Source: Octopus sinensis (Eukaryota). From it: 64,000 nucleotides of DNA. This document shows positions 31,547 through 64,000 of this stretch, in pieces. The notes under the pieces were generated by a model, which was not told the origin of the DNA, did no database searches, and saw only the letters and a list, made by a program, of their open reading frames with translations. The position numbers and the translations under genes were made by a program. The stretch spans positions 62,001 through 126,000 of the forward strand of contig NW_021832015.1 of NCBI RefSeq assembly GCF_006345805.1, written 5' to 3'. Numbering within the stretch: the first letter of the stretch is position 1; each line of letters begins with the position of its first letter.

Positions 31547-31611
<65 letters not shown>

Positions 31612-31667
31612 GGGGGGAGAGGGGAATATATATCTAACCCTAACCTATCAATATATTCGTAAACTTG

Positions 31668-32569: not shown

Positions 32570-34410
32570 AAGTGATGATTTGGAATTCCTTCTCTTCCCT
32601 TTACTCTTTCCTTTCCAAATCTCTTTCTTATTCTTACTAAAAAGCTTCAGATCATCCATGTAGAGCAAATGGTTAATTCTTCCCTTACTATCTCTAAACT
32701 AATAACCTGTATTTATCTTCCTTAATACTAAACTGAGGTGGGATTAAGCATAACACAAACATTAAGGGTGATAACAAGTCTCCTAGGAAAATTCCTCTCT
32801 TGATATTAACTTTCCCTAAGGCCGTATCACATGAGTAAAGATCTACTTTCCAATTCTTTATGCTATAGCTCTTATGTTGTCTGCCATACTAAACATTCTT
32901 AATCATTCACTTATCCATGAGTGTAGAATCATGTCGTAGGCTCTCTTATAATTTATCCATGTTATTCTTTCTAGATTTCACTTCTTTTAGGACTACTTTC
33001 TCTATGCATAATAGATTATATGTTCCTATAGTCTTCTTCCTGTGGCCTTTCAGTTCTGATAATGAATTTTGGCTTGTCATAAACGCTTTCTGAGAGCATT
33101 TCTGTTAAAAGCTTCCACACTAATGGTAAGCAAGTGATAGGTCTATAATTGCTAACTGTATTACTCTTGCTTTTGTCTTTCATAAGGTGTGCTGTTCTCC
33201 CTCTAGTCTTCCAATCTGGTACTATTCCTCCATTCATGCAATCCTGAAGTTGTTCCCTCTGCCTCCCATGTAAGCTACTAATTTTCTTTAACCAGTACTC
33301 TTGAACTAAGTCTGGCCTCGAGCCCTTCCAATTCGACATTTTTCCGAACACTTTACTCATTAATGCTCTAGTTAGTTTTACTGCTTCTCACTAACTACAT
33401 CTTCTCTCTCTTTAAGTATACTGCATCTCCATTACGATTAACTGGCTTATCCTAAATATCATTCTAGCTTCCTCTACATTAGGCTTCTCATCTGCTACAC
33501 AATTATTCAGCGATAAAAAATTTTGGTCTGTCTCATACAATTTGTTCTGTTGATACTGATCTATTCTTTTCTGATATCTGGAAAACTTACCTGCTATTGT
33601 TATGATACGCTGTTTCAGCCTTCTATGACAATCCCAAATCTTTTTTCTTTGACTAAGTATTTTTCTCAAGAAAATATTTAATTCTTGTGTTTCCTAACCT
33701 GTACAGTTTCCAGACTTCTATTCTTAGATGATATCTTAAAGTCTTCACTTTATTCTCTAATCCCCTTTTCCACATTTGCTCCTTCCTATTCTTTTCTTGA
33801 AGAATATCTATTCTGCTACTAGCAGAATTACTATCCCTCTTGCATAGATCAATAAGTTAGTGTCACCTATATTTTTAGTATTTGTCCTAATCTACTATCC
33901 TAATAATATCTGGCAACTTCTTTCTATTAATATCTTTTAATGCTCGTAATCTTTTTTCTTTCTTCTTTACTCATAGCTTCCTTCAAGTCATCCAAAATCT
34001 TCTGATCTTCCTCACTTAATTCTCTGGTGTCAGTCTTTTTCTTCCTGGTCGGTGGTGATATCATTTTTTTTTCTTGTAGGCTCTTCTTTGTATTGTATCA
34101 CTTGTTGTTTGGCGGTTCTATTTCATTTCTCTTCTTTATTTCTCTTGTGATCTCTTCTACCTCCAACAGTGTCATCCACGTTTCCTCCTAATGGCATTAG
34201 CTTGGTCCACTAGTCTCTGTTCTATTACATCGAACATCTTTTTTTTCTCAAAGTGTTAACATGCATTTTCTGTAACCCCTTACTTCGGCTTCATTTTCAA
34301 AGTAGCATTGTATCACTACACTCTTCTCTTTGCTTAACACTGTTCGTGCGGTTTTTTTTTTTATCTTGGCAGCTTCATTATGCACCTGGTGTTATTTTAC
34401 CTTTATCATT
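32570..34410 (-). mobile_element. Old, degraded R4/Dong-like retrotransposon (family F)
   Basis: KMSNWKGSRPDLVQEYWLKK...NYRPITCLPLVWKLLT; (TAA)n at the 5' flank (34425-34485). Confidence 0.75.
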
Positions 34411-44980: not shown

Positions 44981-46983
44981 TAACATTACAGACAACATAT
45001 TAAAATTAATTCCGATCTATTCTACACGCTTCTCCGAGCTATTCCAGAAGAAAAATCATTTTTCCTACTCCAATGCGGACTAATTATATTTGTAAGACAT
45101 ATTCATCAGACCCCTTACCAAGAATCGAAACCTCGGTCTTCCCGCTTGTTTTTATTGTTCTCGCAATTTGTGTTTAGAATTCATTCGTTTTACCTATTTT
45201 ATTCGCCACCATTTTAGATAAGACAGAGTTTAATCTTGTTAATCCATTCCAATCTATTGTCAATGGTCTAACTTGACTTTAGCTCTGCAATAAATTCGAG
45301 ATGCCAAGAGAAAAATGTTCTCTTTCCTCTGCAACTTCCAAACAGTTAACTATGGCACCTTCTCGCGAGCTTTGCGCCATTTGTCCTCCTCCTTGCACGC
45401 AGTTAGGGTTCACTATTAACAACTACCATGGTAATAGATTATCCATCAAAACTAACTAAATTTTGTGTTTACTTCCAACTCGTTGCGGTTCCATAACCGC
45501 GTAAGTAAAATCTACAGTCAGTGTGAATTACCTTTCAGCAGTTCTTTGCGGTGCATCCAGAAATATCATCTAAGCAATGCACAGTCTATCGCCAACTTGT
45601 CACATCTCTATGTGTTACAAACAACTTGCTACATCGTGTCTGTTACGCCTTTCCCGTTACAATTATACCGTTATACATATAAAGTCATGTTTGAAGTACA
45701 TTTCGAAAGTAGCAAGAATATTTCTAAACGTCAGTCCCCTCCCTTCATATCTGAGGCCTTGTGTTAATACTAGAAATAAATGATAGTAAATAAAACTCAA
45801 CATATATTAAAGAAGTAATGATTTCTTATATAAAATCATCTTATATAAATAGGGAAGTCGATTGTATTAAAGGGATTAAGATTTCTTGATTGATATTAAA
45901 GAAATCACGAAAGATATTAAATCCACCAGAGAAATAGGAAACCACGAAGGGTGTTCGTTAAAGATTTCCCCTGACCCACTTCCCAAAGACTGAAATAAAC
46001 GAAACTTGGCATAATTATTTACTCCTTCTCTACATGGCCATCACCAATTGTGTCATAATTCTCCAATCGCTTTACGCAGCTGTAAAAGACAAACGGATAC
46101 TCGTGGAAAGCTGAAATTTACAAAGTGACATGATTCTATGTGACTGCCATAACTGGAAGCGGGTGAGAGGAAATCTTTAATGAACGCCCCTTGTATTTTA
46201 TTTTAATTCCATTTCAGAACTTTGGAATGATTTCAGACAGTCACATACACTGGAGGAGCTCAACTCTGTCGGTTGTGGTGTAAGAGTTTTCGACTCTTAT
46301 TATTTCGTTAACAGTAAGACCGTTTTTTATTGTTTATTTATTGTGTTCTTTATTTCTGTTTTTTTTTTGTTCTTCATCTTTAATTCATTGATCTCAAGTT
46401 CTTGTCGAAAAAATAAGAAATTAATAAATATCTCTTTCTTCCTCATCGCATGATTCCTGCTACTTGGAGTTTTAATTCTTAGTTAAATAGATTGGTGGTG
46501 AATTAATAATTAATAGCCACAAATACATTCAAAATCTGGCAGATGGGTTAATATTAATCTCCGTTGTCATTAAAAATCTCAACACCTTCATTACTAACTT
46601 GCTCAGAAATACCTCAATACATCTCGCTGGTAATACGAGAACCACTCTACCTCCGAGATAACCAACTACATACCACTTCTCATTCTCCCGTCATACATGC
46701 TATTTCACCAGCCAGATCCCACATCAATTATTATCCCCAATCCTTCCTTTCTAGATTATGCAACACTCAGGAACTCACTCCCTGCTCACACTAACTTAAA
46801 GATGTCCAAACAGAACATTAATAACATCAATCTTATCAGCCTGATAAAAGGAGATAGTGATGTCGATAATTAGCAGGTCGACTATATTCATTCACCTTTT
46901 ACCTTATCAGTCTAGAGCAATAATTTACTTTATTTTCTTATAATTCTTCTTTTCACTTTGCTTCTTCTTTTTGTCTGTTACAG

Positions 46984-47174
46984 AAAAAGAAATTAATGAT
47001 TTGACAGCTTTTTCAACTTTTACTTTTAAGCGAAATACATTTAACAACCTTGTAACCAAGACCGACACGAAAGCTCACTCAGTTTTTGATTGTTCACGTA
47101 AATGCTTGATATCTTCTCCATGTATCGCCTTTTCATATAGTAGTAATTGGTGCCAACTAAAGAAACAAAATTAA
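46984..47174 (+). CDS. PAN/apple domain exon 3, terminal coding exon (phase 1 to stop)
   Basis: Long polypyrimidine tract plus GTTACAG|. Encodes ...FDCSRKCLISSPCIAFSYSSNWCQLKKQN*. AATAAA at 47295. Confidence 0.8.
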
Positions 47175-47294
47175 CTTTAATGGAATTCACCCCAAAATGA
47201 TCTACTTATCAATGAAATATGAGCAAGAATTCAACGGATCATATTTACTAATACATCGCAATTATATAAGATAAAATGTGTATGTTTCTTTATG

Positions 47295-47300
47295 AATAAA
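47295..47300 (+). promoter_or_regulatory. Candidate polyadenylation signal of the PAN gene
   Basis: AATAAA about 120 nt after the stop at 47174, followed by T-rich sequence. Confidence 0.45.
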
Positions 47301-48269
47301 ATCAATTTAATTCAGATAATTCTTTTGTTAATTTATTTTTGTTGCTGACGTTTTTCATTTTAAATTAATTTCCTGTTATAAACCCATTCACACGTAGGAA
47401 AATTAATTAGAATATTTAATTTACTCCAATACCAATCAAACAATTTTTTGTTTGGTTCATAGATGAAAGAAAAGTCCAAATACGAAATATTATCATTTAT
47501 AAAAAAGAAAAAGTGAAGTTGTCATTGTGACGATCGAAGACAGAAGATATTTACACCAAGTGAAGCAGACCATACTAGGCCATACTAGATGTGTCAGTAA
47601 CAGCCTTCGTTGAATGGATTGAAGTGGTCACATTCTACAGTTGAAGTTGAATGGCGTAAATTCCAACCGAAGGCTGGCTTAAGGACTTTCACAACCACTG
47701 AGACTAGCTAGGTACAACATCCATATATAGCTAATGTCTATAAAGAAAAGGTGCCAAAGACGAAATCGTTAATGAGATTTCAATATACTCCTGCTGCAGA
47801 TGAAACAGAAAGTTGACCTGGACAACATTTGGTCTCATAACATAACGGGTCTGATCTAAATACTGTAAGCAATTAAATCGAATCTTTAACGCTCCCGCAT
47901 CTAAATAATATTTCAAATAAAACTGCGTTTGACTGATTTCTTTTGAGAAGTGAAAGAATTTGGAATTCAAACTAAACAAATAATCTAGGTAACATCGAAA
48001 ACTTTTCTGAAGAATATGACAAACAGTTTACGAGAATTATTGTACGTCCATTCCAACGTAAGAAAGCACCAAAACCCTGAGGTACCACGAGTTTTAATTT
48101 GGGTTTCAGCTCTGAAAAAATAATTTTTGCAAAAATGTAATGGGGTCGTGCACCAGTTCTACTACAGAGTTAGAAAATTTTTTAAAAAATAAGTGAAACG
48201 GTTGTTCTCTGATGTTTTCCATGCAATAAATTTCACCAGATTTCAGGTGAAAGAAAATACATAACCAGA

Positions 48270-48715
48270 TTTCAAACCTAAACCTAATGTACCGTTTGCA
48301 ACACTGGAATAGGTAAATAAGGAATAAAACAGAGTGGGAAAAAATGGGAGTGATTAAAAAGCTCGATTACTCAAACTGGGCGAGTTCAACTGTATATGTT
48401 AAAAAGAAGAACAATAAAATACGTATTTGTGCAGATTTCTCGACGAAACCAAACGACTATTTAAAACAGTATAACTACCATTTACTTAGCCCAGAGGAAA
48501 TCTTGAAACTAAATGGTGGTAAATTGTTCTCAAAATTAGATCTGTCTGAGGCCTACTTACAGATACAAGTGGAAGATGAATGTGGAAGACAATCAATACA
48601 CTTAAAGGTCTATACAAGTTTAACCGACCTCCGTTTGGCATAAAAGTTGCTCCGGCTATATTCCAACAAGTGATGAGTACGATGCTTGCAGAGTGTGACT
48701 TCACGATCGAATACC
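48270..48715 (+). mobile_element. Gypsy/Ty3 LTR-retrotransposon RT remnant
   Basis: GVIKKLDYSNWASSTVYVKKKNNKIRICADF...FSKLDLSEAYLQI, then frameshifted PFGIKVAPAIFQQ. Confidence 0.85.
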
Positions 48716-48717
48716 TG

Positions 48718-49420
48718 TTGTGCATGCGCACTAAGTTTTAACATTCTAGCTCACTTTCGCTGTTTACAGCAATACTTGGAAGGAATGTGTGTAGCGTGTG
48801 GTTGTCGCGTTGACCATTACAGAGAAAGTCGAGCATAGAATCTGCATCAAATTTTGCCAAAACCTTGGCGATACCTGCTCAGAGGCCTACGCAAAGTTTT
48901 CAAAAAATTTTCATCGTTCTCCACACAATCAAAGAGAACTCGTGCAACTGAAACCCGAGTGTCTTTTTGGTCATCTGAAAGCAATTTCGTCGCAAATTTG
49001 GCGGACACGCGTCTCATACCCAAATCTTCAGTGATAATTGAATGAACTGGACCGAAACTAATCTGCACACCCTCTGATAACTCACGGATGGTGATTCGAC
49101 GATTTCCCCTCACAGCTGCACGCACATCTGTGGTGTTTTACTCAGATTTCTTCGTTGCAGGTCTCCCAGAACTTTCGTCAATAGCGACCTTTTTCGGCCA
49201 TCTTGGAAATGTCTGAACAAGTAGTACACTTGTGTGCGGCTCATACACTCTTCTCCATATACTTTCTGCAACTTTGCATTGGCCTCTGAATAGGTATCGT
49301 CATGACTACTTCCTCTGTCGTGATCAGTGCGATGATCATACGCTACACACGTTCCTTCCAAACACTGCTGTAAACAGCGAAAGTGAACTAGGACGTTTAA
49401 ACTTAGTGCGCATGCGCAGT
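48718..49420. mobile_element. Mariner-family transposon remnant with two 5' ends in opposite orientation
   Basis: + strand 48718-48897 encodes EKVEHRICIKFCQNLG. - strand 48898-49420 encodes KVYGEECMSRTQVY...RRITIRELSE..ISFGPVHSIITEDLGMRRVSAKF. 48722-48800 is an inverted copy of about 49335-49415. Confidence 0.85.
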
Positions 49421-49429
49421 AGAGTCCAA

Positions 49430-50050
49430 GGTCAATCTTTGCTTAGCAGCTACATTCTGCGTGCTTTAGCTTCGTTACTATGGCAACAGTCCAGATACTT
49501 ATTGATCAGACTTTGTATATTGAAGAATTGGTGAAAGTATGCAGAGGTTGTGCTTTAGCTTCAAAAGCTACTACCACTAAATGGCAACCATGGCCAAAAG
49601 CAGATATTCCATGGTCCTAGTTTCTAAGAGTATACCGAGTAACACCTAGTCCCAATCCCCCGTCTGGAATGTCACTTGTGGAATTAATGTTTGCTAGAAA
49701 AATCAGATCCGTCTCTGATAAGTTGATACCGAGTTAAAAAAGAAGAATGGTGAACAACAAGTATACTCTAAGAACTATAGATATGGTAAAGAAATCTGGG
49801 AGAACGGAATAATTATTAAAGAAATTGGAAAAATATTATTCCTGGTAAAAGAAAAAAAATTTCGAACATAAAAGACATATAAACTAACTTTTAAAAAGAT
49901 GTACAGAACAGTCACGAGAGATGAAATTCCCAAGGAAGTATTGTACGACACGTTTGAGGTACTAACACCCAAACAAATGGAAACTAGATATTTAAATAAC
50001 AGAAAAAGGAAAAGAACGGAAATATTGGAATTAAACCCTAAGCGTAAGAG
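49430..50050 (+). mobile_element. Gypsy integrase-region remnant (continuation of 48270-48715)
   Basis: IEELVKVCRGCALASKATTTKWQPWPKADIPWS; later frameshifted TPSPN...MSLVELMFARKIRSVSD. Confidence 0.75.
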
Positions 50051-50102
50051 ATATTACACTCTGGAGTGATATATATATCTATATATATATATATATATTG
50101 AT

Positions 50103-50175
<73 letters not shown>

Positions 50176-50195
50176 TATATATGATATATGAATTT

Positions 50196-50567
50196 AAAAA
50201 ATGATGGATTTGTATAGCGATAGACAGAACGCTATTAATATTGTTTAAAAAAACGTTATATGATATAACGTCATAAGTAGCTAACAGAAAGAGTAGGGAT
50301 ATTAATAGTGAATGTTAAATATAAAGGAAATTAAAGCTTAAATTATATATAATGATAGAGACTACTTATATGCACTAAATGTATGTTTTTGCCAATGCTT
50401 ACATCTGTATGCTCGCTCTATAACCGTGTTTACTAGAGTATTTTTAGAAAAAATAATGAAAAATAGCTCAGAATTGCAGAGAAGACAGAATTTCTTGCCT
50501 TTGTCATATGGTATCGAAATTGAGAGAATCAACCATTCTAAATGAAATTGTTCATTGTGGTCTTTTA
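50196..50567 (-). mobile_element. Inverted partial copy (pseudo-LTR arm) of the Penelope-like element at 50805-52060
   Basis: Reverse complement of 51391-51759 with few differences. Confidence 0.9.
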
Positions 50568-50577
50568 CATGAAATTT

Positions 50578-50731
50578 ACATGAATCACAAGTCTGCTTAA
50601 AAGCAACTCATCACCAAAGAATTGGCTGACCTGACCTGATATGGCCTGAGAAGATCAGAGTAAGAAAGCAGACTAAACGAAACTGGCACTCCGTCGGTTA
50701 CGACGGCGAGTGATCCATTTCCTCCGTTCAA
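50578..50731 (-). repeat. Exact 154-bp inverted copy of 54154-54307
   Basis: Base-by-base comparison shows identity over 154 nt. Confidence 0.92.
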
Positions 50732-50804
50732 TAATGTAGATCAGATTTCTAGTCGTAAAAGAATTATTGATAACAAACATAACTTACGCACCGATACAAA
50801 ACGA

Positions 50805-51566
50805 ATGAAGGCAGATAACCCTTATTTAATCCCCTATTATCGATCTAAAAGTAAATATAAAACCTTCAAAAGTAATTACGCTATGAATACTAGTAAAAAT
50901 ATTTGGTTAATAATTCCTTACGGGAGACAAATTAAATCTAATCTCCCACTGCTGTTTCGTCAAGCTATTGCTAGGAATTTTCCAAACAATTCTAGATATT
51001 ACTCTATAATCAATTCACATAAGGTTAGGATAGGTTTTACAAACACAAAACATCTCTTGCAAATTATCTCTTCTCATAATAACAAACTGTTAAATATTAA
51101 TACATTTACTAATACTAACATTAATTTAGCTAATACCATCCAACCCTCTAGAAATATTAATAACAAGGTTATTGTATCTGAAGTCAATTCCAATAGAATT
51201 AAGTTTATGTCAAGTAACTCTAAGATTAAAAATTCTATATACCAGTGTATATTTAGTACTCGTAATAAAGTACGATTTTACATTGGAAGCACATCGTTAG
51301 AGTTATCTAAAAGAATTTCTATCCATTACTCAACATTTAGGGATAGAAATAAACGGAATAGTACCGGTCTCAGCAAACTGATTTGGGATTTAAAAGACCA
51401 CAATGAACAATTTCATTTAGAATGGTTGATCCTCTCAATTTCGATACCATATGACAAAGGCAAGAAATTCTGTCTTCTCTGCAATTCTGAGCTATTTTTC
51501 ATTATTTTTTCTAAAAATACTCTAGTAAACACGGTTATAGAGCGAGCATACAGATGTAAGCATTGA
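50805..51566 (+). CDS. Penelope-like element GIY-YIG endonuclease ORF (253 aa, no RT)
   Basis: IWLIIPY..IKSNL..FP..NSHKVRIGF..IISSHN, SIYQC...FYIGST..LSKRISIHYSTF...TGLSKLIWDLKD...CLLCNSE..RCKH. This is the Penelope/Neptune-group GIY-YIG signature. Confidence 0.88.
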   Translation: MKADNPYLIPYYRSKSKYKTFKSNYAMNTSKNIWLIIPYGRQIKSNLPLLFRQAIARNFPNNSRYYSIINSHKVRIGFTNTKHLLQIISSHNNKLLNINTFTNTNINLANTIQPSRNINNKVIVSEVNSNRIKFMSSNSKIKNSIYQCIFSTRNKVRFYIGSTSLELSKRISIHYSTFRDRNKRNSTGLSKLIWDLKDHNEQFHLEWLILSISIPYDKGKKFCLLCNSELFFIIFSKNTLVNTVIERAYRCKH

Positions 51567-51790
51567 CAAAAACATACATTTAGTGCATATAAGTAGTCTC
51601 TATCATATATATAATTTAAACTTTAATTTCCTTATATTTAACATTCACTATTAATATCCCTACTCTTTCTGTTAGCTACTTATGACGTTATATCATATAA
51701 CGTTTTTTAAACAATATTAATAGCGTTCTGTCTATCGCTATACAAATCCATCATTTTTTGCTAAAATGTCTTATTGACGAGTTTCGTTTT

Positions 51791-51884
51791 TTTCACTTTC
51801 CTGAGGAGAGGATTGCATTGTTTATACCATTTATTCTTTTGAATAGTATCAGTGGAATTTTCGAAACATGTGTCGAGAGTAAAA
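51791..51884 (+). ncRNA. Type I hammerhead ribozyme in the Penelope 3' region, intact core
   Basis: CTGAGGA at 51801-51807. Stem II GAGGATT/AATTTTC extends to a TATTC-TTTT-GAATA hairpin. GAAA at 51863-51866. Stem III AC-ATGT-GT contains the palindrome ACATGT. Cleavage triplet GTC at 51872-51874. Stem I is TTTCACTTTC/GAGAGTAAAA (9 of 10 positions pair). Confidence 0.85.
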
Positions 51885-52085
51885 ATATTTGATAACACCT
51901 GCGTTAATTTTTTTATTCATATTATTCAAAATATTCAACGTAAACACAAAGTTTCTACCTTTATAAACAAGTAGTTACAACACCTTTACTCGTGAGATTT
52001 TTGCTGCCCTGGTACCTATTTATTTATTTTTCCGTGTTAATTGTTAACAAGGTAAAAATACACTCATCTATTTATATATTGATAT

Positions 52086-52138
<53 letters not shown>

Positions 52139-52449
52139 TGATATAAATACATACATACACAGACATACATACATACATACATACATACATACATACATAC
52201 ATACATACATACATACATACATACATACATACATACATGTATATTCATATTGCAGTATTGCAAATAAATTGAGACCAATTTTAAGCAGTTGACTTAGTGG
52301 GTTTAATGTTTCATTATTTAACAAAAACTTGCTTACTTGAAAAGGTAAATAGCGAACTGATTCAATAAAAGAAAGTCATGGAACAACAGAATCATTCCTC
52401 CATTATTGTTTTGGCATGCGCCGGGCACACTGTCAATAGAATTGTTAAG

Positions 52450-53350
52450 TTGACGAAACTTCCAAAGGCAACAGTTTATTGTGTGTATAGAGAATTTTAA
52501 GAAGTGGTAAAGATTAATAGAAATGAACACAAAACTCGAAGTGATTCCAAGCGCAAACGAAAGTTCCTCGCTGGCCTCAAACGCTCGATTGAAGCTAACC
52601 TATCCACATCCATGACAACTCTTTCAAAGAATCGCAATGTGTCCCTTTCCACGGTGTCCAGGGTTGTGAGCAGGAACCTTGACATAACTATCTTCCACCT
52701 AACAGCCAAGGCCAAAGCAATCAGAGCCGAGAGATGCCCAAAGCTGTCGTATGTATGTATGTTTTTATGTGCAGGAAAAAACTCTTGTGTTTGTGGACGA
52801 AATGAAGTTCACTGTGGACGCTGAGTGATTGCATACAACCTTTCTGGCGTCCTCCCTGTGTTTGAGACTAAGAACCCTGGCTCTATGGTGGTATTTGGGA
52901 CCGTGGTGAGTGATGAAAGTGTCATGGACCCACACTTCATTGAGTCTGGTTTGAAGATCGGCACAAAGGAGTATCTGGACATCCTGAAGAACTCTCTGTT
53001 ACCTTGGATGGAGCAGAAGTTTGGGCTTGATAACGTGGTGCTTATCCAGAATTCTACACCATGCCATGGATGAAAAGACAGGCCTTCCGTGGTGAGAAGG
53101 TGCCTTTTTTGTGAGAGCCAACATCTGGTCCAGTAATAGCCCTGAGCTCAAACTTCTAGATTACTTTCTATTGGACGTACTTCAAACAAGGACCAATGCT
53201 TTACCACTCTCGAATGTCAGCAGTTTGAAAACCTGCATCGTGCGTGAGACACGTAAAATCAAAAGGGCAGAGGTTGCAGCAGCTGCGAAAACATTTCGTT
53301 CTCATGTGAAAGCAGTAATAGGCCAAAAGGGTGGCCATGTTAGGTGATTA
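52450..53350 (+). mobile_element. IS630/Tc1/mariner transposase remnant (DD37D/maT-like)
   Basis: HTH region SIEANLSTSMTTLSKNRNVSLSTVSRVV. Catalytic region LKIGTKEYLDILKNSLLPW...QNSTPCH and IWSSNSPELKLLDYF...VKAVIGQKGGH*. Frameshifted. Confidence 0.8.
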
Positions 53351-53379
53351 ATGTTTTGTTGTAACAAATGTAACATTAA

Positions 53380-53780
53380 AGGCGGCGAGCTGGCAGAAAC
53401 GTTAGCAGGCCGGGCGAAATGCGTAGCCGTATTTCGTCTGCCGTTACGTTATGAGTTCAAATTCCGCTGAGGTCGACTTTGCCCTTCATTCTTCCGGGGT
53501 CGATAAATTAAGTACCAGTTACGCACTGAGGTCGATGTAATCGGCTTAATACCTATGTTTGTCCTTGTTTGTCCCCTCTATGTTTAGCCCTTTGTGGGTA
53601 ATAAAGAAATAGGTATTTCGTCTGTCTTACGCTCTGAGTTCAAATTCCGCCGAGATCGACTTTGCCTGTCATCCTTTTGGGGTCGATAAATTGAATACCA
53701 GTTGCGTACTGGGCTCGATCTAATCGACTGACCCCTTCCCCAAATATTTTGGGCCTTGTGCCTAGAGTAGAAAGGAATAA
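53380..53780 (+). mobile_element. Full composite tRNA-derived SINE (GGCGGCGAGCTGGCAGAA family)
   Basis: Head plus duplicated GAGTTCAAATTCCGC module. Confidence 0.9.
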
Positions 53781-53884
53781 ATGTTACATTAAAATTATGT
53801 CTGTCTGCTACGATTGTTCTGGTATTTCTCACCACCATCTCCCTGCGATTATACTCTACTTTGTTCTGGTTACTCTCTGTAGGG

Positions 53885-54205
53885 AAGGCGTGTGGCAAGA
53901 GTATTCGGCTCTAGATTGTAAAGTCGTGAGCTCGGTATCCGGCGGCGCTTTGTGTCCACGAGCAAGTAAATTCATTTTCACGTTGCTCCAATTCACTCAG
54001 CTGGCAAAAATGAAAGTTGTACCTGTAATTCAAAAGGGCCAGCCTTGTTACATTCTGTGTCACTCTAAATCTCCCAGAGCACTGCGGTAAGGGTAGACAT
54101 GCCTGTGGAGTACTCAGCCACTTGAACGTTAATTTCACGAGCAGGCCGCCCCGTTGAACGGAGGAAATGGATCACTCGCCGTCGTAACCGACGGAGTGCC
54201 AGTTT
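53885..54205 (+). mobile_element. tRNA-derived SINE related to the 1118-1354 family
   Basis: Shared TTCACGTTGCTCCA.T.CACTCAGCTGGCAAAAATGA block. The 3' boundary near GTCGTAACCGACGGAGTGCCAG is approximate. Confidence 0.65.
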
Positions 54206-54523
54206 CGTTTAGTCTGCTTTCTTACTCTGATCTTCTCAGGCCATATCAGGTCAGGTCAGCCAATTCTTTGGTGATGAGTTGCTTTTAAGCAGACTTGTGA
54301 TTCATGTCCGTTGGCATCAAGCATCACCCTATATGTGCTAGCTAATTAACTGTGCTGTACGTCATTAAACTTTGATGACCCGGCTAGGTTCAGTGTAAAA
54401 TAGATGTTTGGTGTCTGGGACAGCGACGCTAGGTAGAAATTAAAGGTAGCGGCGGGCTGCAGGATTCCGAAACCAAGTTCAATTTACTCAACACAACGGC
54501 GCTTCAATTATGTGTGTGTGTGT

Positions 54524-54565
<42 letters not shown>

Positions 54566-54873
54566 CGTGTGTGTGTGTGTATGCGTGCACGCTTATGTAA
54601 ATGCGATTGCACACATCTGTGTATGAGAATTTGTGCGCATATGTAGATGTAGATGTAAGGTAGATGTTTCACGTCTAAAACAAAAGCAGGAGGTTGGAGT
54701 GTGTTTATGAGAGAAAGGCAAAGGAAGAGATAGAAAGGGATAGAGAAAGAAAGAGAGAGAGAGAAAGAAAGAAAGGAGCTTATGCATGTGTACATGTATG
54801 TGGCTGCCAGTGAATGTATATGTGTGTATGTGTAAACGCACACACGTACACACACACACATATATATATATAT

Positions 54874-54919
<46 letters not shown>

Positions 54920-55262
54920 TACTCTAATTCATAGATACATATGTATAAATAAATTACAATATGTAAATATATATGTCTTTATATATGCATCTATGTGTGT
55001 ATGCGTATATATACATATATATATATATGTGTGTGTGTGTGTGTATTATATATATATATATATAATACGTATGTATGTATGTTTTTATGTATCTATGTAT
55101 GTATCTAAGTATGTATGTGTGTGTGTATATATATATATATACATTAACATATATACATATATATGTGCATATACACACGCACACACACACATATATATGC
55201 ATATGTATGTTCGTCCGTGTGTGTGTGAATTCGGGTGCAATCACACACTTGTAGATACGCAC

Positions 55263-55291
55263 TGACGCATTTTTGTCCATTCCTGTATAAA
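55263..55291 (+). promoter_or_regulatory. Candidate promoter of sHSP exon A: TGACGCAT (CRE/ATF-like) plus TATA box
   Basis: TGACGCAT at 55263-55270, TATAAA at 55286-55291, CCAAT near 55321; about 270 nt upstream of the ATG. Confidence 0.55.
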
Positions 55292-55559
55292 TAGGAAACA
55301 GCCTGGGAGCCGAGCAACACTTCATGCACAACTTTCTCCATCCAATCAGTAATCGTTTACTCAATAATTAGCTTAAGATTCTCAAGATAATATTTTAATT
55401 TAAGGATTAGGATTAATTAATCTGATTCAAAAGTAAGAGCTTGGCGAAATCAAGGAATGTAAAGAGAGGTAGAAGAGGAACGCACGCGAGAAAGAACTAA
55501 AGAAAGGGAAAATAAACAAAAGAAAGCTATAAAGCCAGAAAGATAAGATAGAAAGAAAC

Positions 55560-55781
55560 ATGTCTACCCAAAGAAATATACCGATATTCAAGCCCTTCTA
55601 CAGCAACAGCTATCCTTTTTACAACATGTGGAATAATCCTTGGTCAGACTTTCCACCGTTCAATAGGTTGTTCAACCAACACTTTGGCGTGGTTCCTATT
55701 GATGACCTTTTTGGATTCGGCAGAAACTCTTGGAGTTTGCGCAGATCAAATAATCAATCAGAACAGAATGGATTTTCAGAG
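55560..55781 (+). CDS. Small heat-shock protein (HSPB/alpha-crystallin family) first coding exon A, N-terminal domain
   Basis: MSTQRNIPIF...WNNPWSDFPPFNRLFNQHFGVVP...GFSE then a GAG|GTAAGT phase-0 donor. Matches the HSPB1-type WDPF, SRLFDQxFG and SGVSEI motifs. Confidence 0.85.
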
Positions 55782-56344
55782 GTAAGTCTTCGACTATTCA
55801 TTGGCTTTATATGCCTTCGATTCTAAAGTAATTTTAAAGATTGGTTTGGTTGATTTGTGTGACTTTTTGACATCTATCGTATGCTGTTCTGCCATTTTAA
55901 GATTTCAGCAATGGTATTCCCACGATGACTCTTTTTATATCGCTTAATCAAAAAAATGTGGGGGATGGTGATGGTTGTAACCATTTATAGGACCTCTGAA
56001 ACCAATGGTATGGAGAGAGGAAGATATCTTCAAACCGGAGACCCAATTTGAATACTTTCACAGTGGACTCCACTAAAGATATTCCAGAACTAGGTGTTGG
56101 TGGTCACATGAGCGAGGGATTGAGTCTACCAATCATGTACGCCACGGTGGGATTTGAGCTTAGAAAGTAAAGAGAGGACTAAATACCGCAAGGTATCCTG
56201 TCCAATGCTTAAACGAAACCACTTGTCCACTGTTCTTGGCTGGTACCTACCATAGAAGGAGGATATTAAAGTTGATCTCAGGCGTGTTCGAACTCAGAGC
56301 ATCGAAATCCAGAACAAGTACTGAATGTCTTTAACCTCCTTTAT

Positions 56345-56720
56345 CGTTTATCTTTTACTTGCTGAGACATCGCATTGAAAGGTTTTGTTGGATAAATCGG
56401 ACCCTGGTACTTATGCTATCGTTTGATTACGTCCCCGCTAAGTTACAGGGACGTAATCAAACCAACATCGGTTGTCAAGTGGCGTGAGTGAAATGAATAC
56501 ATCACAAAGACGCACACAACAACATACACATACACGACGGGCTAACCCACATAGTTCCCGTCAACCAAATCCATTCACTTCACAAGGCATTGATCGACCC
56601 CGGGACTATAGTAGAGGATATTTGCCCAAGGTACCGGGCAGTGGGACTGAACCTGAAGCCACGTGGTTGCGAAGCGAGCGTCTTAACCACACAGCCACGC
56701 CTGCGGCTATGAACACAGAA
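56345..56720 (-). mobile_element. Diverged SINE (GCAGGAGTGGCTGTGTGG family)
   Basis: CTATAGTAGAGGATATTTGCCCAAGG...ACCACACAGCCAC.CCTGC. Confidence 0.8.
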
Positions 56721-57074
56721 CTCTGCAATGTCGTCCGGTGCTCTTACAATTCTGTCACTTCGCATCGTATACTCTATCCGTGGCAGATTTCTTTAATAGT
56801 CAACGACTGAAAGCATATAAAAGCGAAAATGGTCTTGTAAGATTAATCTGAGAACATCTGAAGTTATCGGCCGCGGGCTTACAACTCCCTCCACACAATA
56901 TAGACATTACAAGATTGCGTGGTATAATTGATTTCTGATATTGTTACGAAAAATCAAATCTGAGGAAGGAAACGTTTGATTGTATTGAACCAAGTACTTA
57001 ACGGGTACTTCATTCTTTCTCGCTCTTCACTCTCACACACTCTCCTTCTTTCTCTGTTTCTATCTGTCTTTCTC

Positions 57075-57131
<57 letters not shown>

Positions 57132-57199
57132 TATGCACCTGCGTTAGATAAAACCTTGAAACCTGGAGGTGAATGAATGTTGAGTGGATAAACAGATAT

Positions 57200-57201
57200 T
57201 G

Positions 57202-57236
<35 letters not shown>

Positions 57237-57779
57237 AGGAAAAAGAGGGAAACAAAGAAGACAAGAAGGAAAAAGAAAGAAAGAAAGAATAAAAGAAGAA
57301 AAAAGGAAAGGAAAAATAAAGAAAGAGAAAGAAAGAATGAAAAAAGAAAGAAGAAGGAAAGGAAAGAAAGGAGAGGAAGAAGAAGAAAGAGGAAGAAAAG
57401 AAGGGAAGGAAAAAGAAAAGAAGGAGGGAACGAAGAAAGAAGGAAAAGAAAGAAAGAAAAAGAAAGAAAGAAAGAAAGAAAGAAAAGAAGAAGAAAGAAA
57501 GAAGAAAGGAACAAGAGGAAAGAAGGAAGGAGGAGGAAGAGAAGAAGGAAGGAAGGAAGGAAAGGATAGGAGGGAGGGAGGGAGGAAGGAAGGGGGGGAA
57601 GGAAAGAGGGAGAAGGAGGGAGGAGGAGAGAAAGAGAAAGAAAGAAGAAAGAAAAGAACGAAAGAAGAAGGAAAAGAAAACAGAAGAAAACAAACAAAGA
57701 AACAAGAAACAAAGAAAGGAAAGAAAGAAAAGAAGAAAGAAGAAAGAACAAAAGTTAACAAAGAAGAAAGAAGAAGAAA

Positions 57780-57836
<57 letters not shown>

Positions 57837-57910
57837 AGGAAACAAAGAAAGAAAGAAAGTAACAAACAAACAAACAAACAAACAAACAAACAAACAAACA
57901 AACAAAGAAA
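57200..57910. repeat. ~700-bp purine-strand tract, (GAAA)n/(GGAA)n/(CAAA)n
   Basis: Direct inspection; source of the F/L/S-rich and K/E/R-rich pseudo-ORFs. Confidence 0.95.
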
Positions 57911-58381
57911 GAAACTGGGTTTGGGTGAATTACTTGAATATAGATTTGTTGCCGAACCGAGTCCGGCAGCAAATTTAAGGAGAAAGAATTCAAAGAATAA
58001 AAGGCCAATCTAAGAGCTTTGGTTAAGTTTCGTGTGACAGAGAATTATGTTCAGGTTTCAAGTGAAATATAGAGGAAGGGTTGTGTTTTTTTCTTAAATA
58101 CCATAGAACAAGACTATTCGAAGAATTAAATATTATGGTATAAACAGAAAAGAGGCAGTAATGAGGACATCAAGGGCCGCCTTAGAAGCACAGAGGCCCG
58201 CGAACAAATCAGCGAACTGAACTTCATAGTATTTAATTATTGAGAGCAAAAGCCACAACAACATACATAGATCAGAACTGGGTTCCTAAGGCTGTGAGGA
58301 TCCCGGGCAACTACATAGAAAGCCTATCCCTTAAGATGGTACTACACAGCTCAAATATTTACCAAAAATTGGCTTCTGAAT

Positions 58382-58529
58382 CATTAGCGTAGCTAGGGTT
58401 GGGGCGGTAGGTGCGGTCCGCCCCGGGCGGCACTTTTGGGTCTGCTGTAGGTAATATGTGTTTTTTTTGGGGGGGGGGCGACAAACGGAAGGGCCGCCCC
58501 TGGTGGTACACACTCTAGCTACGCTAGTG
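58382..58529. mobile_element. hAT-type MITE (148 bp)
   Basis: TIRs CATTAGCGTAGCTAG / CTAGCTACGCTAGTG match at 14/15. Flanking 8-mers TTCTGAAT and TTCTTCAT match at 6/8, consistent with a decayed 8-bp TSD. Confidence 0.7.
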
Positions 58530-58547
58530 TTCTTCATCTGTTCAGTT

Positions 58548-58577
58548 ATTGCGTCTTATTAGCAAATAAGACGCAAT
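58548..58577. other. Perfect 13-bp hairpin
   Basis: ATTGCGTCTTATT-AGCA-AATAAGACGCAAT. Confidence 0.85.
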
Positions 58578-59072
58578 TTTTTTTTAATCTCTAAACATTA
58601 CCCCGGCTCCTAACCGAGCAATTGAGCCTCTCATGTGCTTTAATGCACTAAACATTTTTTTTTTTCCTTTCCTGACATTGGATTGCGTCTAATAGGCCCA
58701 TAAGTCTTTTATGCTATCTTGTAGTAGATCAGTGGATCTACCAGATAAAATAGTCTGTAGTCACTTGGTAGGTACCATTTTTATTTTTGCGAGTCTTTAT
58801 TCTTTCGAATAAATTGCCTGATATTTTGTAAATATTCTCCAACGACTCAGATATTTTTCACTTAGTTTACTCTCACTCATTTCCGCTATTTCCGCCGTGC
58901 TGAGATTCTATCAAAATCTCAACATTAGTTTATCATTCACAAGGAAATATTTAAGACAGGATGTCTTTGGCATCAAGCCAAGTCTTGATTACGTGGGCAA
59001 AACTTCTTCGTATACCTTTCTAGGTAGGCTGAGAGGTGATTCTAGAACATGCATGATTCATACAGGCTCTCA

Positions 59073-60355
59073 CACGCGTAAGTTCTCTCTCTCTCACACA
59101 CTCACACACTCTCTCTCACTCCCCTCTCTCTCACACACACACACACTCTCTCTCACTCCCCTCTCTCTCTCTCTTTCTCTCTCTCTCACACACACACTCT
59201 CTCTCACTCCCCTCTCTCTCTTTCTCTCTCTCACACACACACTCTCTCTCACTCCCCTCTCTCTCTCTCTTTCTCTCTCTCTCACACACACACACACTCT
59301 CTCTCTCTTTCTCTCTCTCTCTCACACACACACTCTCTCTCACTCCCCTCTTTCTCTCTTTCTCTCTCTCACACACACACTCTCTCTCACTCCCCTCTCT
59401 CTCTCTTTCTCTCTCTCTCACACACACACACTCTCTCTCTCTCTTTCTCTCTCTCTCTCACACACACACCCTCTCTCACTCCCCTCTCTCTCTCTCTCTC
59501 TTTCTCTCTCTCACTCCCCTCTTTCTCTCTTTCTCTCTCTCATGCACATACACACTCTCTCTCACTCCCCTCTCTCTCTCTTTCTCTCTCTCACACACAC
59601 ACTCACTCTCTCACTCCCCTCTCTCTCTCTTTCTCTCTCTCACACACACACTCACTCTCTCACTCCCCTCTCTCTCTCTCTTTCTCTCTCTCACACACAC
59701 ACTCACTCTCTCACTCCTCTCTCTCTCTCTTTCTCTCTCACACACACACACTCACTCTCTCACTCCCCTCTCTCTCTCTTTCTCTCTCTCCACACACACT
59801 CACCTCTCACTCCTCTCTCTCTCTCTTTCTCTCTCTCACACACACACTCACTCTCTCACTCCCCTCTCTCTCTCTCTTTCTCTCTCTCACACACACACTC
59901 ACTCTCTCACTCCCCTCTCTCTCTCTCTTTCTCTCTCTCACACACACACTCACTCTCTCACTCCTCTCTCTCTCTCTTTCTCTCTCTCACACACACACTC
60001 ACTCTCTCACTCCCCTCTCTCTCTCTCTTTCTCTCTCTCACACACACACTCACTCTCTCACTCCCCTCTCTCTCTCTCTCTTTCTCCTCTCACACACACA
60101 CTCACTCTCTCACTCCCCTCTCTCTCTCTCTTCTCTCTCTCTCACACACACACTCACTCTCTCACTCCCCTCTCTCTCTCTTTCTCTCTCTCATGCACAC
60201 ACACTCTCTCTCTCACTCCCCTCTCTCTCTCTTTCTCTCTCTCATGCACACACACTCTCTCTCTCACTCCCCTCTCTCTCTCTTTCTCTCTCTCATGCAC
60301 ACACACTCACTCTCTCACTCCCCTCTCTCTCTCTTTCTCTCTCTCATGCACACAC
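59073..60355. repeat. Higher-order CT/CA minisatellite (~40-45-bp unit, roughly 30 copies)
   Basis: Unit approximates CACACACACTC(A/T)CTCTCTCACTCCCCTCTCTCTCTCTTTCTCTCT. It explains the 513-aa S/L/H/T pseudo-ORF. Confidence 0.92.
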
Positions 60356-60445
60356 ATTGTACACGCAATCTACCCAGTTATACGTACATTCACACCAAGT
60401 CACAAATAGTTCAGACAAATACAACATACTTTACGTAAATGCATG

Positions 60446-60478
<33 letters not shown>

Positions 60479-61122
60479 TGCGTGTGGGTGGGTGTACGTA
60501 AGCATATGTGCATGTGTATACACACACACATATACACATGATCAAACGCATACACACGCTCACACATACATCCACACACATTCACACATACCATACACAC
60601 TCACACACACATACGCTCACAAATACACCTACACACATACACACACACATAGACACGCTCACACATACGCTCACACATACACACACACGCTCACGCATAC
60701 ATCCACATACACATACACACACATACACACGCTCACACACTCATACACACACATACATACACATACACACATACGCTCGCAAATACACCTACGCATATAC
60801 ACCTACACATAGACACACTCACATACACACTTGCACATACACACACACACACTAATACCCGCACAATACTCCTAGATTAAGTTTCTTTCACACATTGATT
60901 TAAAGTAACATTATATCAATGACACGTGACGTATCAGAGGCGGCGGGAAAGAAAGGACTTTCCGGTTGAGTTAGTCACGACTGGAAGGAGCGATAATCGA
61001 TGGAGGATGCAAATCAAAATAAGAGCAATCCGGACATTAAACAAAACAGTTCAAATAGCCCCAATAAAATGTTTTAAAATATATGGACATGTAAAAAATT
61101 ATCTCTCCCTCTCTCACTCTCG

Positions 61123-61158
<36 letters not shown>

Positions 61159-61234
61159 ATATCTATATATATATATATATATATTACTTGGAAATGAATG
61201 CGTCGGGTTCAATTAATTAATAAATAGTAAATAG

Positions 61235-61420
61235 CAGGAGTGGCTGTGTGGTAAGTAGCTTGCTTACGAATCACATGGTTCCGAGTTCAGTCCAACTGCG
61301 TGGTACCTTGGGCAAGTGTCTTCTACTATAGCCTCGAGCCGACCAAAGCCTTGTGAGTGGATTTGGTAGTCGGAAACTGAAAGAAGCCTGTCATATATAT
61401 ATATATACACACATATATAA

Positions 61421-61455
<35 letters not shown>

Positions 61456-61700
61456 TGTATGTATGTATGTATGTATGTATGTATGAATGTATGTATGTAT
61501 GTTTGCGTGTCTGTGTTTGTCCCCCCAACATTGCTTGACAACCGATGCTGGTGTTTACGTCCCCGCAACTTAGCGGTTCGGCAAAAGAGTCCGATAGAAT
61601 AAGTGCTAGGCTTATAAAGAATAAGTTCTGGGTCGATTTGCTCGACTAAAGGCGGCGGTCCAGCATGGCCGCAGTCAAATGACTGAAACAAGTAAAAGGG
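61235..61700 (+). mobile_element. Full-length SINE (GCAGGAGTGGCTGTGTGG family)
   Basis: tRNA-like head, CORE-like block, internal (TATG)n and 3' body. Confidence 0.9.
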
Positions 61701-61744
61701 TAAAAGAGAAAAAGAGTAACATATAATATATATGTGTGTATATA

Positions 61745-61917
61745 TATATATACGACGGGCTTCTTTCAGTTTCCGTCTCCCAAATCCACTCACAAAGCTT
61801 CATTCTGCCCGAGACTATAGTAGAAGACACATGTCCCAGGTGCCACGCAGTGGGACTGAACTCGGAACCATGTGGTTGGTAAGCAAGCTTCTTACCACAC
61901 AGCCACTCCTGCGCCTA
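61745..61917 (-). mobile_element. SINE 5' half in inverted orientation next to 61235-61700
   Basis: Reverse complement of the head region 61235-61390. Confidence 0.88.
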
Positions 61918-61946
61918 TATGTATATATATAAACATACACGCAAGT

Positions 61947-61986
<40 letters not shown>

Positions 61987-62028
61987 ATATATATATGTAA
62001 TATATATGTATATAATATATTATATATA

Positions 62029-62091
<63 letters not shown>

Positions 62092-62208
62092 CAATCGAGA
62101 TAGGGGTTGTAAATGCAGTCTCTTATGTGGTGGTTTAATAAAGTATGTGATTGAGTATTATCTGGTAATTGATATTTGATTTAGATGTATTTCTCCATTT
62201 TCTTATCT

Positions 62209-62239
<31 letters not shown>

Positions 62240-62242
62240 TGT

Positions 62243-62289
<47 letters not shown>

Positions 62290-62490
62290 AGTATGTATGT
62301 ATGTATGTATGTATGTATGTATGTATAATAATATAAACTTGCATGTATGTTTATATATATATTATACACACACACACACACACACACACATGCACAGTAA
62401 CATACGACCACGCATGCGCATTTCTATCAAGTGAATCTATATGCATAGTTATAGCACTAGTTAGTGTTGACTAGCTAGTTAAGCAGAGAA

Positions 62491-62540
<50 letters not shown>

Positions 62541-62794
62541 TGACAGACAGACAGACTGACAAACAACCAGGTAGGCAGACAGGCATGTTGATTGACTCGT
62601 AGATAGGTAGATAGATAAATAGACAGGTAAATAGATAGAAACATTTGCTGACCCCGTTTTTTAAAAATAAATATACAAAGGTTAACTCGAAGATGATGGA
62701 ATGGGAATGATGCAAGTGAAGGAAGAAGTTTTTAAGAGTGGAATAGGTATAGGTTAGGAATGGAGAGGGGAAGGAGCGGGGAGGAGGCACTGAG

Positions 62795-63059
62795 TGACGC
62801 ATGCCCTATACTCACACACATTCAGTCTGCCTCTTTCTCTCCCTACTTCTCTCTCTCTCCCCTTCTCTCTCTCTCTCTCTCTCTCCCTTGTTTCTGTTAA
62901 CTGCTGCTATTATAAATTGGAATATTGCTTCTAACCGAAACTTCTACAAAGAGAGCCACCTGTAGTTCTGTTTGAGTCACAGAACACACTTTATATTAAG
63001 ACAACAACTAAAGCAGCCGCCACAGAATTGGCATCGCTGAGAGAAGAATTTTCTACAAG
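62795..63059 (+). promoter_or_regulatory. Candidate promoter of sHSP exon B with HSE-like dyads
   Basis: TGACGCAT at 62795-62802 and TATAAA at 62911-62916. nGAAnnTTCn at 62936-62945 and 63045-63054, each followed by an imperfect third unit (aCAA). Confidence 0.5.
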
Positions 63060-63109
63060 TTATTGGCAGTATATTTGTTTGGTTACAGTGAAAATCCGAA
63101 ATCACAAGA

Positions 63110-63370
63110 ATGGCAAGTCCTCATTATCCCTACTCACGATCCCTGACACCGCTGTATAACAGAATGCCTTCGTGGAGCATTTGGGAGGACCCATGGACTG
63201 ATATGCCGCCATTTTCTCGACTCTCTGACCAAAATTTCGGAATATCTCCAATGATGGATGATTTCTTCAGTCATTGGCAAAACTGGCGTCGATCGAATAT
63301 GCACAGTGGATTCCACCATTCTATGCCTGTGGCCCAACAACATTCAGCTGTGTCTACAGGATTTTCAGAA
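63110..63370 (+). CDS. Small heat-shock protein first coding exon B, N-terminal domain
   Basis: MASPHY...IWEDPWTDMPPFSRLSDQNFGISP...STGFSE then a GAA|GTAAGA phase-0 donor. Clearly paralogous to exon A. Confidence 0.85.
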
Positions 63371-63483
63371 GTAAGACAAGATTTTAACGCCCAAATTTTC
63401 TTACTCTAACATTTCTCTTTTCCATGTTCCGTGTTTATAAGTTCTAATGTCATATAACTTAATCACATGTTTCTCTATTTTAG

Positions 63484-63554
<71 letters not shown>

Positions 63555-63601
63555 TCGAAAAATACCTTAAAAATGAGAACCCAGGTTCGATATTTCCCCA
63601 A

Positions 63602-63647
63602 GACACCTGATGAAGGCAGGAGAGTATATCAGCTGAAACGTTCTGTT
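63602..63647 (+). ncRNA. Minimal (dimer-type) hammerhead-like motif within a (TAA)n-associated repeat (63553-63740)
   Basis: GACAC CTGATGA A GGCAGG..TCAGCT GAAA CGT T CTGTT. The core is intact and stem III is palindromic (AACGTT) with no loop. There is a mismatch in stem II and a C-C mismatch at the base of stem I. Confidence 0.5.
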
Positions 63648-63819
63648 AACAGCAAACAAGATGAGGAAAAATATCCGTCAAATGTAAATAATGTAAATAA
63701 CGTAAATAATTTAAATTCTGAGTTTAAATTCCACCAAATTTGATCGACAAAATGGTCCAAGGATTGATATACCTGATTATAGCTAATCCTTGAAACCTTG
63801 TGCTATACTATTATTATTA

Positions 63820-63855
<36 letters not shown>

Positions 63856-63872
63856 CATCATCATCATCGTCA

Positions 63873-63912
<40 letters not shown>

Positions 63913-64000
63913 TTATTATCATCATCTCATCATCATCATCATCATCATATTATTATTATTATTATTATTATATTATTGAGTGAGAGAGCAGTTCATGCCA

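Follow-up and report, generated by a model that had tools for sequence, protein, structure and literature searches.

Tandem paralogous first exons that probably share a single alpha-crystallin core in an octopus small heat-shock protein gene

A 64,000-nucleotide stretch of the Octopus sinensis genome (NCBI RefSeq assembly GCF_006345805.1, contig NW_021832015.1, positions 62,001 to 126,000 of the forward strand; hereafter the window) harbours two consecutive exons, termed 1A and 1B, each of which encodes the N-terminal domain of a small heat-shock protein (sHSP). The alpha-crystallin domain (ACD) that such a protein requires is encoded neither between the two exons nor anywhere else in the window, and the question raised by the locus is how two N-terminal exons can be put to use when no core lies between them. 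It is very probable that both belong to one sHSP gene, in which they serve as tandem, paralogous and mutually exclusive first coding exons in front of a shared core. The exons and their borders are listed below in window coordinates.

55560–55781, plus strand: exon 1A, 74 codons, MSTQRN...NGFSE, equal to residues 1–74 of XP_036354796.1
55782–55787, plus strand: splice donor GTAAGT of exon 1A, in phase 0, with the E of GFSE as the last codon before it
55782–63109, plus strand: the part of intron 1A that lies within the window, 7,328 nt, without a coding exon; for 1A transcripts it would include the putative promoter 1B
63110–63370, plus strand: exon 1B, 87 codons, MASPHY...TGFSE, equal to residues 1–87 of XP_029654771.1
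63371–64000, plus strand: start of a 19.0-kb intron, which opens with the exon 1B donor GTAAGA (phase 0)

Sequence comparison confirms 1A and 1B as paralogous sHSP N-terminal-domain exons. Their peptides are 44% identical over 59 residues (BLASTP, E = 6e-14) and the alignment contains 31 invariant columns, including W..PW.D.PPF.RL..Q.FG and RRSN. Exon 1A encodes a complete N-terminal domain with an ATG start; relative to it, exon 1B carries an extra insertion of 14 residues, rich in His and Met, ahead of GFSE. The segments NRLFNQHFG of 1A and SRLSDQNFG of 1B align to SRLFDQ(A/F)FG of HSPB1 and CRYAB. Pfam assigns neither exon peptide to a family, and PF00525 (Crystallin) is unmatched even at E = 10. 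The original prediction of two homologous sHSP N-terminal exons of 74 and 87 codons, with GFSE ends and phase-0 GT donors, is borne out. The RRSN tetrapeptide is invariant in both N-terminal domains (55734–55748 in 1A; 63287–63298 in 1B), and a related cuttlefish protein, described below, has RRHQ; as a matter of speculation, RRSN might be a candidate phosphorylation site for a basophilic kinase, as in HSPB1 and HSPB6.

Searches for the missing part of the protein cover the entire window. A hidden Markov model (HMM) of seven sHSP cores, run with the --max setting on six-frame stop-to-stop segments of at least 12 residues, gave a best E-value of 5.8, inside a retroelement. By tblastn, the cephalopod core found nothing in the window better than E = 1, and human CRYAA, CRYAB and HSPB1 produced chance-level matches only, besides weak N-terminal ones to 1A and 1B. 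Both methods agree that no alpha-crystallin exon is present in the 1A–1B interval or elsewhere in the 64-kb window, so that an absence first reported for the non-repetitive parts of the interval holds throughout. A further N-terminal-domain exon was likewise not found in the 1A–1B interval by HMM or tblastn.

The core is located beyond the end of the window. Window positions 45560–64000 correspond at 100% identity (18.4 kb) to positions 1–18441 of the locus on O. sinensis contig VCDQ01003107.1 (L003), and addition of 45559 converts an L003 coordinate into a window coordinate; the window as a whole takes up positions 62001–126000 of this contig. A single core is found on this contig, 19.0 kb (exon 2) and 21.5 kb (exon 3) past exon 1B; slashes mark exon borders.

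L003 10001–10222: exon 1A
L003 17551–17811: exon 1B
L003 36809–36985 (window-equivalent 82368–82544): core exon 2, 59 codons, with acceptor cttttccag/GTGAGC in phase 0 and donor AGG/gtaaat
L003 39327–39461 (window-equivalent 84886–85020): core exon 3, 44 codons plus stop, with acceptor ctttcag/GAATGC

When joined to exons 2 and 3, exon 1A translates, residue for residue, into XP_036354796.1 (isoform X2, 177 aa), and exon 1B in the same manner into XP_029654771.1 (isoform X1, 190 aa); the junctions from 1A or 1B to exon 2 and from exon 2 to exon 3 are all canonical and in phase 0. X1 and X2 have an identical C-terminal part of 103 residues (VSNDEKEFKVRLDV...SSANL), which is encoded once. The HSP20 domain of Pfam (PF00011) starts at the splice junction in both isoforms, spanning residues 75–168 of X2 and 88–181 of X1 with scores of 88.6 and 88.4 bits, respectively (cut-off 20.8). 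In exon 3, ERVIPITQE aligns to ERTIPITRE of CRYAB, and the C-terminal I-x-I/V anchoring motif is present. Among relatives of solved structure, human alphaB-crystallin is the best match (E = 1.4e-30); in it, TGLSE/M corresponds to TGFSE/V and TIPIT to VIPIT. RefSeq names the O. sinensis gene 'alpha-crystallin A chain', isoforms X1/X2, and the protein is an ordinary member of the metazoan HSPB/alpha-crystallin family. The proposal that 1A is spliced over promoter 1B and exon 1B to a common core past position 64000 is supported by the annotation together with this exact genomic fit.

Neither 1A nor 1B is preceded by a usable in-frame acceptor, so that a 1A transcript could be joined productively only to exon 2. 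In genes with alternative first exons, an exon that starts where transcription does possesses a donor and lacks an acceptor, and by the same logic a 1A pre-messenger RNA would lose promoter 1B and exon 1B within one long intron. A transcript initiated at 1A would have its donor joined to the next productive acceptor, that of the shared exon 2, 26.6 kb downstream, with promoter 1B and exon 1B removed as intron, and a transcript initiated at 1B would be joined to the same exon 2. Between them, the shared exons 2 and 3 encode the ACD and a C-terminal tail that bears the IPI motif. The outcome would be a 177-aa and a 190-aa isoform that have unlike N-terminal domains and an identical core.

A two-sequence profile of 1A and 1B, compared with 1.84 billion representative proteins, retrieved one real relative, a 175-aa sHSP from larval transcriptome runs of the cuttlefish Sepia esculenta (P0001), the N-terminus of which matches the profile at E = 3.7e-10. 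In this protein ...SGISE is followed directly by the alpha-crystallin domain; it matches 1A at E = 3e-16 and 1B at E = 3e-10. Its use as a query recovered the following octopod proteins, and both O. bimaculoides forms are present in UniProt as well.

XP_036354796.1, isoform X2, Octopus sinensis, 177 aa: 1A type, first 74 residues identical
XP_029654771.1, isoform X1 (= CAI9735461.1 of O. vulgaris = UQK61748.1), Octopus sinensis, 190 aa: 1B type, first 87 residues identical
XP_014783063.1 (X1), O. bimaculoides, 190 aa: 1B type
XP_014783064.1 (X2), O. bimaculoides, 181 aa: 1A type
UQZ95906.1, 'alpha-crystallin A', Callistoctopus minor, 177 aa: 1A type, a non-RefSeq GenBank entry
'isoform X1', Argonauta hians, 186 aa: 1B type

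The order 1A, 1B, one core is the same in three independent Octopus assemblies, those of O. sinensis, O. vulgaris and O. bimaculoides. With the N-terminal-domain HMM, each Octopus locus yields exactly two exons, at E-values between 1e-33 and 1e-39, and Argonauta yields one; with the core HMM, every locus yields exactly one copy each of exons 2 and 3. The 49-kb O. sinensis locus follows this pattern, with exactly two N-terminal-domain exons and exactly one pair of ACD exons. Coordinates in the other species are as follows.

O. vulgaris, chromosome OX597830.1 (L004): 1A 3483–3704, 1B 10001–10261, exon 2 31441–31617, exon 3 33959–34093, no N
O. bimaculoides (L001): 1A 10013–10234, 1B 16094–16354, exon 2 22133–22309, exon 3 24647–24781
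Argonauta hians (L002): 1B 10001–10249, exon 2 12303–12479, exon 3 12917–13051, no N

The O. bimaculoides locus contains N gaps at 13630–14695 (1,066 N, between 1A and 1B) and 17807–18127. The intron from 1B to exon 2 is 2 kb long in Argonauta, against the 19 kb of O. sinensis. Positions 1–3523 of the first 10,000 nt of L002 are taken up by an actin gene.

Exon 1A retains its start codon, its 74-codon frame and its donor in the three Octopus genomes, and the N-terminus of the C. minor protein also comprises 74 residues. Between O. sinensis and O. bimaculoides the exon differs at 8 of 222 nt (3.6%; 3 synonymous and 5 non-synonymous changes), giving a ratio of non-synonymous to synonymous substitution rates (dN/dS) of 0.36 on the basis of just these 8 substitutions; the corresponding figures for exon 1B are 9 differences in 261 nt and a dN/dS of 0.19. 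The 2.7 kb around exon 1A are ~87% identical (~13% divergence). In O. bimaculoides an in-frame ATG is found four codons (12 nt) upstream of the 1A start (MERNMSTQ...), at a place where O. sinensis has ATA; the O. bimaculoides X2 coding model (181 aa) thus starts 12 nt 5' of the O. sinensis ATG (window 55548–55562 against L001 10001–10015).

The candidate control elements in front of 1A and 1B are listed here; HSE denotes the heat-shock element and UTR the untranslated region.

55210–55559, plus strand: candidate promoter and 5' UTR of 1A, a conserved block
55286–55293, plus strand: conserved TATAAATA, 274 nt before the 1A ATG
62911–62917, 62992–62999 and 63070–63076 (TATATTT, 34 nt before the ATG), plus strand: TATA-like motifs before 1B, conserved in O. 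bimaculoides
62936–62950, plus strand: HSE-like site 1, CGAAACTTCTACAAA, with units GAA-TTC-cAA, 174 nt before the 1B ATG
63045–63059, plus strand: HSE-like site 2, AGAATTTTCTACAAG, 65 nt before the 1B ATG

In the 350 nt 5' of exon 1A, ~95% of alignment columns are identical across O. sinensis, O. vulgaris and O. bimaculoides. Each exon had been credited with a TATA promoter of its own. For 1B this agrees with the conserved TATA-like motifs, but for 1A the motif in question, TATAAAG at 55528–55534, is not conserved: it reads TACAAAG in O. bimaculoides and, being situated 26 nt before the ATG, would allow almost no 5' UTR. Both HSE-like sites have three units and are conserved in the three Octopus species; sites of this kind number 18 in the 64-kb window, and ~0.05 would be expected per 175 nt. 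Within 1 kb upstream of 1A no HSE-like site occurs in any species. The distribution of these elements suggests a separate promoter for each first exon, and it suggests further that 1B may be a heat-inducible start acting through the two HSE-like sites, and that 1A may be regulated differently.

The reading of 1A and 1B as alternative first exons has to be set against three others. Exon 1A might be an orphan relic of a partial duplication, untranscribed or unproductively spliced, in which case the X2 models would be artefacts of cross-species protein alignment. The O. sinensis X2 coding range begins exactly at the ATG, which could betray a model devoid of 5' UTR support, and the lack of conservation of TATAAAG points in the same direction, as does the fact that no Logan transcript contig on record matches the X2 product, in an index confined to each gene's longest product. 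This last point is uninformative, since the 1B-type product is equally absent: the exact X1 product occurs on two genome assemblies (O. sinensis and O. vulgaris) and on no transcript contig. A relic, moreover, would hardly be expected to keep its 74-codon frame, ATG and GTAAGT in three Octopus genomes, to be represented by a 1A-type protein entry in C. minor and by an O. bimaculoides protein in UniProt, or to be far better conserved, together with the 350 nt upstream, than its flanks. The orphan partial duplicate, which the original prediction had offered as the alternative, is disfavoured by the retention of frame, length and donor in O. vulgaris and O. bimaculoides and appears quite improbable.

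Another possibility is that both exons enter one transcript, or that 1A is spliced to an acceptor-like site before 1B, with 1A playing a mainly regulatory part by triggering nonsense-mediated decay (NMD). A polypyrimidine-AG sequence suited to this is present at 63073–63089 (tatttgtttggttacag/TG) and is kept in O. bimaculoides; yet joining the 1A donor to position 63090 would place TGA right after GFSE and yield a product of 74 residues, and an NMD exon leaves unexplained both the conserved frame of a full N-terminal domain and the recorded 177-aa proteins that combine 1A with the core. This course of events is highly improbable. Considered with its following triplet, the same acceptor-like site (tatttgtttggttacag/TGA, 63073–63092, 21 nt before the 1B ATG, conserved in O. 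bimaculoides) might instead serve a 5' UTR exon of 1B that is missing from the annotation. The remaining explanation, that 1A and 1B are two separate tandem sHSP genes and that the alpha-crystallin exons of 1A have been lost to an assembly gap or collapse, draws on the repeat content of the interval, 41% of which consists of tandem repeats prone to misassembly, and on the 1,066-N gap between 1A and 1B in the O. bimaculoides assembly. Against it, the O. sinensis window has no run of N (0 runs), nor has the chromosome-level locus of O. vulgaris; three independent assemblies give 1A, 1B and one core; and the 103-residue core, identical in both annotated proteins, is encoded once. As every Octopus locus has exactly two N-terminal exons and one core pair, collapse does not account for the layout, and the existence of two separate genes is scarcely credible.

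One gene with two mutually exclusive first exons is the reading that is retained, and a number of observations weigh against it. The case for splicing is built on database entries, namely the RefSeq X1/X2 models of two species and the GenBank proteins UQZ95906.1 and UQK61748.1, and on the exact agreement of the annotated O. sinensis proteins with the genome; for UQZ95906.1 an origin from cDNA could not be confirmed. No 1A-type exon is present within 10 kb upstream of the 1B-type exon in Argonauta hians, and cuttlefish transcripts in the collection show a single, 1A-like form only, from which it follows that the two-exon arrangement may be limited to Octopodidae. To these may be added the small number of substitutions behind the dN/dS of exon 1A. 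As regards regulation, each HSE-like site contains one mismatch, and by an equal criterion no such site lies upstream of the Argonauta 1B-type exon.

How many first exons does the locus possess? A third was not found in the 55 kb upstream, in the 19-kb intron from 1B to the core or in the 10 kb beyond the core. What the intron does contain is a small remnant, B', outside the window.

L003 23916–23996 (window-equivalent 69475–69555) and L004 16079–16150: B' remnant of exon 1B

In O. sinensis B' is an 81-nt copy at 98.8% identity: 71 nt reproduce the 3' end of exon 1B and a further 10 nt belong to the intron. Its GTAAGA donor is intact, and it has no start codon. It is embedded in ~6 kb of additional intron sequence of O. 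sinensis and O. vulgaris; the orthologous position in O. bimaculoides lacks it. Situated 21 nt upstream of B', a polypyrimidine-AG would, if used, define a frame-shifting exon of 92 nt.

The 1A–1B interval owes its 41% repeat content to micro- and minisatellites, alongside which it holds three copies resembling a short interspersed element (SINE). The interval is ~1 kb shorter in O. vulgaris. Its repeats, and the further contents of the window, are as follows; ORF stands for open reading frame.

59109–60355: CT/CA-rich minisatellite with a 51-bp period, ~26 copies and 85% match, the biggest block of the 1A–1B interval
7639–8059, 15228–15657, 56524–56710, 61234–61419 (minus strand) and 61641–61940: SINE-like repeat of ~190–300 bp, copies 74–90% identical
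29434–29811, plus strand: PAN/apple-domain exon-like ORF (PF00024, E = 2.4e-10)
45560–47174: annotated neighbour gene, ending near window position 47174, also with PAN_1 matches
10037–12704, 21267–21689, 25010–28723 and 30704–31282: decayed retrotransposon fragments with RVT_1/zf-RVT ORFs, mostly on the minus strand
33016–33360, 36253–37512, 39982–41085 and 48300–48740: further such retrotransposon fragments
50805–51566, plus strand: ORF of 253 aa with an ATG, rich in Asn, Ser and Ile, without a Pfam match, just 3' of a reverse-transcriptase-like stretch

The SINE-like repeat matches no tRNA or Rfam entry, and Rfam and tRNA scans of the whole window were likewise without a match. The PAN_1 matches identify the gene next to the sHSP gene on its upstream side as one for a PAN-domain protein. 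The abundance of decayed retrotransposons is typical of repeat-rich octopus intergenic DNA, and the 253-aa ORF, which adjoins a reverse-transcriptase-like stretch, may be part of a retroelement.

The possession of two N-terminal domains on one core bears on function. The N-terminal domain of sHSPs governs oligomer size and dynamics as well as the choice and binding of clients, and by analogy with these proteins the octopus isoforms would be expected to differ in oligomerization or client binding; they may also co-assemble through their common alpha-crystallin domain. A bolder proposal is that the locus represents a one-gene octopus version of the vertebrate division of labour between alphaA and alphaB, with a developmental or tissue promoter, possibly eye-related, at 1A, an HSE-bearing stress promoter at 1B, and oligomers and clients that differ between the two. 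The C. minor 1A-type entry carries the name 'alpha-crystallin A', an indirect hint at an eye-related role, and a 2023 paper is said to deal with crystallin genes in O. minor eye development. The proposal is doubtful; were it true, there would be hetero-oligomers whose composition tracks promoter choice. In any case, a locus that swaps the N-terminal domain alone on an identical core offers a clean comparison of two such domains.

As a two-isoform gene the locus is a rediscovery, given that RefSeq, GenBank and UniProt already contain both isoforms. The records match 1A plus core and 1B plus core exactly, but they are automated or plain entries that offer no interpretation in terms of paralogous first exons. 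The statement that such an architecture was not known for sHSP genes overlooked the listing of both isoforms in RefSeq and UniProt; a literature search yielded no description of alternative first exons in any sHSP gene, cephalopod or other. The value of the case is limited by these existing records, by the commonness of alternative first exons and by the presence of two variable exons only.

The gene architecture is of the familiar type in which variable first exons precede constant ones. UGT1A and the clustered protocadherins likewise have tandem paralogous first exons with donors of their own, no productive acceptor and shared downstream exons, and in them, too, an upstream variable exon skips those that lie downstream of it when spliced, as is proposed for the octopus gene. 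The original description of the locus as 'protocadherin-like' was nevertheless overstated: the count of further first exons gives just two usable variable exons and an 81-nt remnant, neither a stochastic choice of promoter nor conserved elements for promoter selection are in evidence, and the variable part is a disordered-type domain of 74–87 residues instead of a substrate-binding or ectodomain module. Among sHSP genes, l(2)efl of the insect Dendroctonus ponderosae, one example with annotated isoforms, was considered and ruled out as an instance of the same architecture by its single set of N-terminal exons, which is split differently. Rodent alphaA-ins crystallin shows isoform diversity at the same exon 1/exon 2 boundary as the octopus gene; there, an alternatively used cassette exon that lies between exons 1 and 2 of CRYAA inserts 23 residues, whereas in the octopus the whole N-terminal domain would be exchanged by means of alternative first exons.

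Vertebrate CRYAA, CRYAB and HSPB1 have in common with the octopus protein the family, the N-terminal SRLxDQxFG motif, the ACD and the C-terminal IPI motif. Vertebrate alpha-crystallin/HSPB genes consist of three exons. CRYAA exon 1 ends after ...ISE (residue 63), an intron position matching that of the octopus, and this shared position would explain why both octopus exons end in GFSE; the second octopus intron, after LLPR, is placed differently from the vertebrate one. The two lineages differ most in the way the N-terminal domain has been diversified. In vertebrates this came about by duplication of whole genes, resulting in a lens-enriched alphaA and a stress-inducible alphaB, whereas in the octopus exon 1 has been duplicated within one gene, which would make the locus a compact case in which a protein is diversified through a duplicated exon 1 and a choice of promoters instead of duplication of the whole gene.

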